From sequence record NC_048016.1: 64,000 nt of DNA; one strand, 5' to 3'. Positions 49,622 to 57,477 of the stretch are shown here, one piece after another; position 1 is the stretch's first letter, and the number at the start of each line of letters is the position of its first letter. The notes under the pieces were generated by a model that was given only the letters and a program-made list of their open reading frames with translations, had not been told where the DNA came from and did no database searches. The translations under genes were made by a program, and so were the position numbers.

Positions 49622-50059
49622 ATGGTCGCGAAAATTAAAGTAATCAAAACTGAAGAAGTAAAACATATCGCCAACGGTATTCTGTTGGAGCGTCCGCTGT
49701 CGGACTTCGCTAATCCCGACGATCTTCAATCCGCGTTCCGTCGTCTGGTGCGGGGGCTGCTCTACTGCGAAAAAGGTGTGCCGGATACCTCTGGCATGAA
49801 CGCCTTTGATGCACTGTTTCGAGTGAAAACCATCGAGCCCGATCGCGTCTGTGGTTCCATCGTTGATGCCACGGTCGACGTGGTGGATAACAAGGTTGTG
49901 GTGCGGGGTACCTTTGTCCCGGCCGGGCCATTGAAAGAGATGGCAAAGGTCGCGATGGATATCCTCGATGAGCTGCCACTGGTTCCGCGCTACGTGTTGA
50001 ACTACGACGGCAAAATTGCATCGGTTGAGACGTGGGACCTGCTGGACCTGCAGGGATGA
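49622..50059 (+). CDS. Probable catalytically inactive prohead-protease (S80-like) paralog (145 aa)
   Basis: LYCEKGVP ~ LYGE.GHP; R...I...VCGSI; VRGTFVPAGPL ~ G...P.GP.G; LVPR ~ FSIR; ETWDL ~ ITWD; catalytic His and Ser positions substituted. Confidence 0.6.
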   Translation: MVAKIKVIKTEEVKHIANGILLERPLSDFANPDDLQSAFRRLVRGLLYCEKGVPDTSGMNAFDALFRVKTIEPDRVCGSIVDATVDVVDNKVVVRGTFVPAGPLKEMAKVAMDILDELPLVPRYVLNYDGKIASVETWDLLDLQG

Positions 50060-53756: not shown

Positions 53757-54137
53757 ATGTCAGCCTTACGAGTATGGACAATTCAGATGGGCCAGTGGCG
53801 TAAAGCCGTGGAGAAAGACATACCCCTCCTGAATATTACAATCAAGTCCGGTGAAGCTATCTTTGCACCGGACTGGGATTTCTTGATGACGTATAAAGAT
53901 TCCGCCAAAACCCCCGAGGATGAACGCATTTACACTCGGGCGTATGCCGCGAAGATTAACCGTAAACTCAAAGAATTCCCGAATAAGTTTTCAGATATAT
54001 TTAATAACAGTGAGATAGCCTTAGCCTGTTATTGTCCGGCCGGTGAATTCTGTCATCGGCATTTGTTTGTCAAAGTCCTACAACAGCTCGGTAAGCAACT
54101 CGGTAGAGAAGTTATTTACATGGGCGAAATCACTTAA
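53757..54137 (+). CDS. DUF488/YeaO-like protein (126 aa)
   Basis: AIFAPDWDFL..YK, IALACYCPAGEFCHRHL; ATG 53757 behind AGGAG. Confidence 0.7.
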   Translation: MSALRVWTIQMGQWRKAVEKDIPLLNITIKSGEAIFAPDWDFLMTYKDSAKTPEDERIYTRAYAAKINRKLKEFPNKFSDIFNNSEIALACYCPAGEFCHRHLFVKVLQQLGKQLGREVIYMGEIT

Positions 54138-55928: not shown

Positions 55929-56267
55929 ATGTTCGGTTGGTTCCGACATTACAAACAGTTAAAGGAAGAGCACGCCGTGTTAACCGAGACCACGGAGTTT
56001 CAGGCTCAACTGATCGACGTGCTTCGTGAACAGGTAAAAGCAGCCACCGGTCTCGCGAACACACAGCGCAACACCATAGACCTGCTGAGCAAGAACCGCG
56101 ACATAAATGAGCGGACACTTGATCTGGTGTTGACCATACTCGCCACCGCAGTCTACGAGCGACGTGACCCACTTGACGCCATTGGTCGGGTGTTTAGAGC
56201 GATGTCACCAAAAACCTGTGCTCGGGTTGCAAAATTAATATTAGCTGAAAGGAGTAATAAATGTTAA
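55929..56267 (+). CDS. Coiled-coil hypothetical protein (112 aa)
   Basis: GGAGA RBS; heptad pattern. Confidence 0.7.
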   Translation: MFGWFRHYKQLKEEHAVLTETTEFQAQLIDVLREQVKAATGLANTQRNTIDLLSKNRDINERTLDLVLTILATAVYERRDPLDAIGRVFRAMSPKTCARVAKLILAERSNKC

Positions 56268-57436
56268 AACCACGCAAGACCCGTAAGAACCGTGCTCAAA
56301 TAACGTTCCGTGAAGACGGGGGAACTACTTACTACTCCCCGAACTGCAAACCCCTGAAGCACACTAAGGAACAAATTGATACCCTGGCGAAAATAGTCTT
56401 GCAACGTCCCGCCAGCATTTGGTACGGCTTGCGTGCGATACAAGGGCACAACAACCGACCGGACTATCCGTATCATGCTTTACGGGCAATGTCGGAGAAA
56501 GAATGGAACTTCCATTGGCAATGGAAAGCCTTATCGCGCGCCGCACATGTTGACCAAGTGGAACAGTGTGCTCTTCGTGACGAAGTTAACCCACTGGACT
56601 GGTCTTGGCAGCCTGAGTTCCTGCAAAACTTGGATTACCTCACCCGCAAGGCGTCGCTGACCGATTACCTAATTGGCTTCGACCCGGGCCGTCCTGAAGG
56701 TTCAGCGATGGCGATGGTGGTCAAAGGTCGTCAGCCGGGGCTGTTCTCCGCAGACGCTATTCGTACTGGTAAATCGGACTGGCAGTTACACGCTGCAATA
56801 GCGCAAGGGCCAGATGCGGTGAAGGAACTTATCGCACAGCGCCTTGCTAAGCTGCCTGACACGGAGATGCCTCTCAACCGTGAACGTTGGGCGGGACTGA
56901 TAGATGAGAACCAGCCCGTGGCAAAGGCATCGCGGATGCCACTACCAGCAGGCAGACTCAAGATGTCGCGTGAGTTTGTCGTCTCAGAGAACAGCCTCGA
57001 GCGCGGGGGTTTTGAACACACGGTGGGCGGCAACAAACCTATCGGTGTTCACCTCAAGCAGTCCGTGCCGGTCCTGAATAATCCTGAACTCGTAGGGGTT
57101 GACCCTTATTCCCCAGACTTAACGACTGAGCAGAAAGCGGCCATCGTTGCAGAAGCCAAAATTAACTCAGCTTACTTCTTCAGTATTCTAAGAAACCCAG
57201 CACCAGACGGGAGCAGAACCACGCCGTTCACGGACGTTGAGAAGCAAGAGATTCAACTGCATTACGAGTATCACCACCCCTACCACAACCTCGATGTCTC
57301 CACGAAGTATTACTTCCCGGTCATTCCATCGGATGAAGTGTTTGCATTTCCGGGTCGCGGCATGACGCCGTTCACGCCACAGCATGACCCTGACCATCTG
57401 AATCTGCCACTGGGTTCTAAACTCGAAGACGAATAA
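56261..57436 (+). CDS. Mosaic hypothetical protein containing a terminase-N-terminus-like segment (391 aa)
   Basis: AAGGAGTAAT RBS; LNNPELVGVDPYSPDLTTEQKAAIVAEAKINSAYFFSILRNP; no Walker motifs. Confidence 0.55.
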   Translation: MLKPRKTRKNRAQITFREDGGTTYYSPNCKPLKHTKEQIDTLAKIVLQRPASIWYGLRAIQGHNNRPDYPYHALRAMSEKEWNFHWQWKALSRAAHVDQVEQCALRDEVNPLDWSWQPEFLQNLDYLTRKASLTDYLIGFDPGRPEGSAMAMVVKGRQPGLFSADAIRTGKSDWQLHAAIAQGPDAVKELIAQRLAKLPDTEMPLNRERWAGLIDENQPVAKASRMPLPAGRLKMSREFVVSENSLERGGFEHTVGGNKPIGVHLKQSVPVLNNPELVGVDPYSPDLTTEQKAAIVAEAKINSAYFFSILRNPAPDGSRTTPFTDVEKQEIQLHYEYHHPYHNLDVSTKYYFPVIPSDEVFAFPGRGMTPFTPQHDPDHLNLPLGSKLEDE

Positions 57437-57445
57437 AAAAGAAGC

Positions 57446-57477
57446 GGTAGCCTTAGGGCTACCCTCTTTTATTTTTT
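57446..57477 (+). terminator. Intrinsic terminator, possibly bidirectional
   Basis: GGTAGCC-TTAG-GGCTACC, T tract after and A tract before. Confidence 0.75.

Follow-up and report, generated by a model that had tools for sequence, protein, structure and literature searches.

The protein gp156 of the Erwinia jumbo phage Wellington (NC_048016.1; 244,950 bp; host Erwinia amylovora), annotated in the public record as a terminase large subunit, is, at a probability that we put at roughly 90%, not a terminase but a lineage-restricted, non-enzymatic accessory protein composed of exchangeable cassettes (head, core, middle, and C-terminal), of which the C-terminal cassette is an old, exapted version of the three-helix arm that precedes the ATPase in the large terminase (TerL) of SPN3US/phiKZ-type phages. 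The DNA analysed, referred to here as the window, is the 64,000-nucleotide stretch corresponding to genome positions 62001-126000, and coordinates are those of the window unless the genome is named. The features of the locus are as follows.

55929..56267, plus strand: gp155, 112 aa, overlapping the start of gp156
56261..57436, plus strand: coding sequence of gp156, 391 aa, YP_009806640.1, from the ORF list and the record annotation 'terminase large subunit' (GenBank/RefSeq)
56261..56494, plus strand: basic N-terminal head cassette, aa 1-78, net charge +10, beginning MLKPRK.RK.R.Q
56495..56755, plus strand: conserved core, aa 79-165, with the motifs W.FHWQWK and G.DPGR.EG...KGR.PG and containing YLIGFDPGRPEG
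56756..57034, plus strand: variable middle, aa 166-258, from DNA and protein alignments
57035..57280, plus strand: TerL-like module, aa 259-340, homologous to residues 33-98(-112) of the TerL gp285
57281..57433, plus strand: acidic C-terminal tail, aa 341-391, net charge -5, with the conserved motif K.YF..I..DE..A.P
57446..57475, plus strand: terminator-like hairpin with a T run, of the intrinsic type, closing the gp156 operon

The gp156 gene is the last of a long plus-strand operon. A strong Shine-Dalgarno sequence (gaaaggag, 56248-56255) lies 5 nt 5′ of its ATG, which overlaps the stop codon of gp155 by 7 nt; judged from this arrangement, the overlap is one of predicted translational coupling. 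The gp155 gene is found upstream of the gp156-type gene in Wellington, in phage Kwan, and in two metagenomic relatives. The same operon holds gp144 (49622-50059, 145 aa), annotated as a head maturation protease and matching phrog_7478 (E 7e-37), as well as a tail-less HslU-like ATPase. Also in the window, gp150 (53787-54137) is annotated as a 'putative GIY-YIG catalytic domain protein'; its PHROGs matches are to families of unknown function only, the homolog in one relative carries the Pfam tag DUF488-N3a, and the GIY-YIG annotation may be weak.

A first-pass annotation, made from the letters of the window, had placed a terminase-like fragment at 57071..57210 and had quoted a peptide from it. 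The ORF list confirmed that the 391-residue frame carries this peptide, and the interval corresponds to gp156 residues 271-317, right to within one codon. A search of PHROGs matched residues 270-323 of gp156 to positions 101-155 of the 807-position TerL family phrog_2 (E 4.5e-6), the sole match of the protein in that collection. By BLASTP, residues 272-350 aligned with residues 46-120 of gp285, the annotated TerL of Wellington, at 39% identity over 80 residues (E 6e-12), and hhalign comparison of the two family alignments (gp156 family, n = 7; TerL, n = 24) paired residues 259-324 with TerL residues 33-98 at 98% probability (E 1.9e-13). Together, the PHROGs, BLASTP, and hhalign matches indicate that the similarity to jumbo-phage terminases is real. 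The proposal of a terminase-derived segment, which would have failed had no significant alignment to jumbo-phage terminases been obtained, thus held up.

The genuine terminase of the phage is gp285, a protein of 702 aa encoded at genome positions 236257..238365, 117 kb from gp156. When the Wellington genome was searched with the PHROG profiles, a 764-codon open frame at 236 kb matched TerL far more strongly (E 2.5e-51), and gp285 itself matched phrog_2 with an E-value of 2.5e-56. Its family profile matched T4 gp17 (E 9e-13) in three blocks, one extending from Walker A to Walker B and two in the nuclease, while its AlphaFold model (mean pLDDT 85) matched the gp17 structure 3cpe (Foldseek E 2.6e-20) and other solved terminases as well. 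Invariant in the TerL alignment are R122, Q123, G125, and K126 of Walker A, D224 and E225 of Walker B, and D412, D586, and D587 of the nuclease; the Walker A loop aligns to SRQLGKT of gp17, and D412 and D586/D587 align to the gp17 nuclease. In the gp285 model, the N-terminal arm is made up of helices 63-75, 77-84, and 101-111, which are followed by a strand at 115-119 and then by the P-loop.

The model of gp156 was poor (mean pLDDT 43), with a lone confident island at residues ~270-340 (pLDDT 70-83). The helices at gp156 residues 289-301, 303-311, and 325-338 pair with TerL helices 63-75, 77-84, and 101-111 in two independent models, and at the BLAST offset of 226 the helices of the island are exactly these three TerL helices. 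The motif of the helical arm that stands before the ATPase core, L.NP.L..VDP...LT.EQK..I..E...N..YF, is present in gp156, and the copy stops ahead of TerL strand 1 (115-119) and the P-loop. The two families have eleven conserved positions in common (G36, L46, L51, V54, D55, P56, L61, E72, N76, Y79, and F97 in TerL numbering), and the TerL-invariant residues W78, R82, R101, G102, and W108 are absent from the gp156 module, which appears to have retained the determinants of its own fold and to have dropped the residues that couple the arm to the nucleotide site. Compared with SPN3US/phiKZ-type TerL and T4 gp17 (phrog_2; PDB 3cpe and 2o0h), gp156 shares the same three helices and the 11 positions within residues 259-340, but is without everything from the P-loop on (Walker A and B, the ATPase sheet, and the RNase-H nuclease), and its 258 upstream residues have no counterpart in SPN3US/phiKZ-type TerL.

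Five features of large terminases were tested in gp156, which has one of them, the N-terminal arm, and fails the other four. No Walker A loop (R-Q-x-G-K-T/S) was found in gp156, where the homology ends at TerL residue 98-120 with no such loop after it, and there is no counterpart of TerL D224-E225 as a Walker B and catalytic glutamate (hhhhDE). The first-pass annotation was therefore correct in reporting neither Walker motif, as the match in gp156 ends just before TerL R122-Q123-x-G125-K126. An RNase-H-like nuclease with conserved acidic residues was likewise not found in gp156, and a fold search with the gp156 model gave no terminase-like overall fold (best VIA Z 4.1, to unrelated chains, with nothing above noise). 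A profile search of the PDB with the gp156 family gave no match, solved terminases included; Pfam showed nothing in gp156 or its relatives, and the ESM Atlas returned no usable match for gp156.

Because gp156 is without Walker A, Walker B, and nuclease, its annotation as 'terminase large subunit' is an error; gp157 (419 aa), its ortholog in Kwan, bears the same label. We see virtually no chance that gp156 is a genuine second large terminase, as the annotation of Wellington gp156 and Kwan gp157 would have it. That annotation and the weak PHROG match to TerL speak in its favor, but the match covers 54 of 807 profile positions, Pfam is empty, and neither Walker motifs nor nuclease are present. 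A split or second terminase was rejected for the further reason that a complete TerL, gp285, is encoded at 236 kb.

One part of the first-pass annotation did not hold, namely that YLIGFDPGRPEG (residues 136-147, window 56666..56701) is the first strand of an RNase-H-type fold. The conserved core in which it lies (aa 79-165) is near-identical between Wellington and Kwan, and the gp156 model there is of low confidence and without strands, with the region of YLIGFDPGRPEG modelled as coil at a pLDDT of ~25. Since it has no alignment to the TerL nuclease and no modelled strand, and since the pEa_SNUABM_11-type and P0130 relatives have another residue in place of its Asp, an RNase-H/RuvC-type strand at this position was rejected. 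A second resemblance, PGRGMTPFT at window 57356-57385 (gp156 aa 366-375), recalls GRGLT....GPFT of TerL. Pairing PGRGMT..PFT of gp156 with GRGLT..GPFT around the TerL Walker B, which came out only in a greedy hhalign and with the DE deleted, was rejected, as its confidence was negligible and Kwan-type alleles do not have it, and the likeness to the Walker B flank is probably due to chance.

By tblastn against 50,697 phage records, full-length relatives of gp156 were detected in Wellington, Kwan, and pEa_SNUABM_11 only. The ~76 other jumbo-phage records match through their genuine TerL genes and only over gp156 residues ~251-350, with two matching places per record occurring only in Wellingtonvirus records. 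A large protein collection contained four metagenomic relatives of gp156, at 49-97% identity and with the same gene order. A profile search with the N-terminal 258 residues of gp156, with the pEa_SNUABM_11 row absent from the query, covered 1.84 billion representatives and yielded eight proteins, namely members of this clade, fragments, and a pair of long repeat proteins; the small yield of so exhaustive a search indicates that the rest of gp156 is an orphan. The proteins P0132 (3202 aa) and P0135 (1717 aa) align through 13-14 short repeated stretches with the variable middle in the gp156 profile, and these matches are most likely spurious, arising from low complexity or repeats. Among the papers searched, none discussed gp156.

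Comparison of the alleles showed a mosaic. Wellington and Kwan DNA is near-identical through codon ~160-165, with a recombination breakpoint near aa 160-165, and identity resumes at the terminator hairpin (57446..57475), while the C-terminal ~225 codons are strongly diverged. Synonymous sites in the diverged stretch are saturated (pS 0.75-0.85), indicating that the C-terminal alleles are old and were swapped by recombination rather than produced by fast point change. The Kwan protein follows pEa_SNUABM_11 in its C-terminal part and Wellington in its N-terminal part. Insertions of ~30-40 residues are found in the variable middle of Kwan and pEa_SNUABM_11, and the final ~25 residues of the gp156 tail are missing in the Kwan-type allele.

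The basic head is also exchanged. It exists in two divergent allele types and occurs alone as relic ORFs of 72-77 aa (P0001, P0008, and P0131). The relics at L008:3501-3734 (pEa_SNUABM_11) and L010:753-977 (metagenomic), of 74-77 aa, carry a type-A head, and a full gene with a type-B head follows each of them directly, as if recombination had displaced one cassette and left this trace. In contigs from three of four runs, belonging to three studies (plant, food, and seed metagenomes), window positions 56269-56495 are swapped for 229-239 other letters between Wellington-like flanks, the breakpoints falling just past the start codon and at W.FHWQWK. A 244-kb contig from a leaf metagenome covers the entire gp156 locus at ~96% identity, and a seed metatranscriptome contains one related contig, which diverges after codon ~90 and, being a contig, is no evidence of transcription.

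The gp156 head was also found on P0134 (445 aa), which shares the head only and has an unrelated body, and on P0133 (199 aa). A further relative, P0130 (298 aa), occupies the same position in a 239.5-kb genome, upstream of the depolymerase and the DUF7941 array. It has no TerL-like module, nor is there a hidden copy in other frames. With P0134, P0133, P0130, the relics, and the natural head swap, a conserved N-terminal module is thus seen on unrelated bodies at one locus. On this comparison of alleles, the gp156 locus is an actively exchanged accessory gene, marked by cassette shuffling, and the homology, the allele alignments, and the swapped bodies bear out the first-pass reading of a non-catalytic piece of TerL, the N-terminal helices ahead of Walker A, within a mosaic accessory ORF. 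In SPN3US (NC_027402.1, 112638-115238), six unrelated small hypothetical genes occupy the slot that in Wellington holds gp155, gp156, and the EPS depolymerase. The conserved DUF7941 virion-protein array begins just after this slot, which has the look of a hyperplastic region.

This organization recalls the internal-protein (IP) locus of T4, in which a short conserved N-terminal capsid-targeting sequence stands before hypervariable bodies. The gp156 family is alike in architecture only (a conserved head, polymorphic bodies, and a recombination hot spot), and differs in that its head is ~75 residues long and is of two types. It is quite unlikely that the gp156 family consists of polymorphic proteins delivered with the virion or targeted to a compartment, with the basic head as targeting signal and the bodies, including the TerL-like cassette, as cargo. 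Such a role would fit the conserved head on the unrelated bodies of P0134, P0133, and P0130, the displaced head-only relic ORFs, the swapping of the head cassette in natural populations, and the position of gp156 next to virion structural genes. However, the head itself is of two divergent types, and a reading of the alignment gave no conserved prohead-protease site past the head, the S/A/G-x-E triplets of gp156 not being conserved in its relatives.

Within this shuffled protein, the TerL-like module is the best-conserved segment. Over 30-40 residues its mean pairwise identity across five lineages is 0.75-0.78, compared with 0.2-0.5 in its surroundings. The dN/dS of the module is 0.13 for Kwan against pEa_SNUABM_11, 0.13 for P0005 against P0006, and 0.29 for Wellington against P0005, and at least five lineages with saturated synonymous sites have the module intact and in frame. 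On these codon comparisons, the module is under purifying selection. That it is a non-functional relic, left by an illegitimate duplication of the terL 5′ end that was fused in frame by chance, is very unlikely: the module does cover only the start of TerL, ending ahead of the catalytic motifs, and one relative is without it, but the low dN/dS, its place as the most conserved block of the family, its integrity in the saturated lineages, and its grouping as a single old clade all disfavor this explanation. The module is nonetheless dispensable, as its absence from P0130, a close relative with the same synteny, indicates.

When the seven gp156 modules were placed in a tree together with 24 TerL arms, they grouped as a single clade (99/97 support), whose long branch lay outside every TerL sampled and not beside the TerL of Wellingtonvirus. 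A recent self-capture of Wellington terL was rejected on this basis, and gp156 resembles the TerL of its own phage (39% identity) no more closely than that of SPN3US. The module also diverges independently of TerL, as TerL of Kwan is 100% and that of pEa_SNUABM_11 93% identical to the TerL of Wellington. No co-variation between module and TerL was seen: Kwan and Wellington, with identical TerLs, have gp156 cassettes that are ~40% identical.

With regard to function, we tentatively suggest, at somewhat less than even odds, that the module is a docking piece for a ligand of the TerL N-terminal arm, through which gp156 would tether terminase assembly, set its timing, or compete with it. In its favor are the homology to TerL, the pairing of the helices in two models, and the conservation of the module under purifying selection in an accessory protein whose phage has a complete TerL elsewhere. 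The suggestion also draws on other phages, since residues 1-58 of P22 TerL are the minimal TerS-binding domain, so that there the pre-ATPase N-terminus of TerL binds TerS, and in lambda TerS binds TerL (PMC9611059). The P22 segment and the N-terminus of lambda gpA are likewise short, lie before the ATPase, and are sufficient alone to dock a packaging partner (PMC9611059). These N-termini are different from and non-homologous to the gp156 module, to which they have no sequence relation, so that docking by gp156 is an analogy, and the conserved residues shared with TerL could be determinants of the fold only. Also counting against docking are the lack of co-variation, which would have linked the module to TerL or its partner, the dispensability of the module as seen in P0130, and the low confidence of most of the gp156 model.

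In the proposed mechanism, the gp156 module would bind the ligand that the N-terminal arm of the genuine TerL also binds. This ligand might be a packaging-initiation partner (a TerS-like factor) or another component of the packaging site, and through it gp156 might tether, time, or compete with assembly of the terminase, whether this serves the cycle of the phage itself or is directed at relatives infecting the same cell. Further contacts would come from the other cassettes, with the +10 head possibly making nucleic-acid or targeting contacts.

The main rival to docking, which is possible if on the unlikely side, is that the TerL-derived three-helix unit is kept merely as a stable fold and that the job of the protein is unrelated to packaging, for example host takeover or anti-defence by way of the other cassettes. 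The residues common to gp156 and TerL do look like helix caps and core positions, and the module varies independently of a TerL that is invariant. Within the family, bodies are exchanged freely on one head, and the gene lies in a hot spot that in SPN3US holds unrelated small genes. Against this, selection is strong specifically on the module, relative to the remainder of the C-terminal half, which fits a specific interface somewhat better, and none of the searches (Pfam, ESM Atlas, fold, and PDB profile) indicated an alternative function.

The first-pass annotation had also raised the possibility of a decoy for terminase-sensing immune receptors of the Avs type. Avs1-3 are reported to bind directly to the terminase and portal folds that they sense (PMC13581612), and gp156 copies part of the protein sensed by them, at a locus that is polymorphic as arms-race genes often are. 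A decoy role is nevertheless highly improbable. The sensors are reported to recognize the terminase fold, whereas gp156 holds ~65-90 residues from upstream of the ATPase core, with no P-loop, core sheet, or nuclease; Avs3 was solved with a whole terminase (PDB 8dgc), a structure that the gp285 model matches, while the gp156 profile matches no solved terminase. The first-pass annotation also named dominant-negative inhibition of packaging, a reading that none of the present results favor.

Small proteins that interfere with packaging are known from satellites, where the SaPI protein Ppi and the PICI protein Rpp bind terminase subunits of the phage. Like gp156 as proposed here, these are small, non-enzymatic proteins that occupy the interface of a terminase subunit. 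They differ in being satellite-encoded and in targeting TerS by unrelated folds that are not derived from TerL, whereas gp156 is encoded by the phage. A more specific and unlikely version of the docking proposal is that a free-standing TerL docking arm on a cassette-shuffled carrier controls who packages DNA, for example by sequestering a TerS-like initiation factor, and in this way times packaging or sabotages co-infecting related jumbo phages, whose TerL arms have the same motif. If this were true, the module would be a ready bait for the small-terminase equivalent of phiKZ/SPN3US-type phages, in which we know of no small terminase that has been identified.

For annotation, these results reveal a propagated error, in that neither gp156 of Wellington nor gp157 of Kwan is a terminase, and 'TerL' phylogenies or host-range tools that choose genes by name could pick the wrong one. 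For the biology of the family, they mean that selection can preserve the pre-ATPase arm of a jumbo-phage terminase as a module in its own right. This argues that the arm does something by itself, docking being the simplest possibility. A naturally isolated N-terminal arm of TerL is also a practical bait for whatever the arm binds in phiKZ/SPN3US-type phages.
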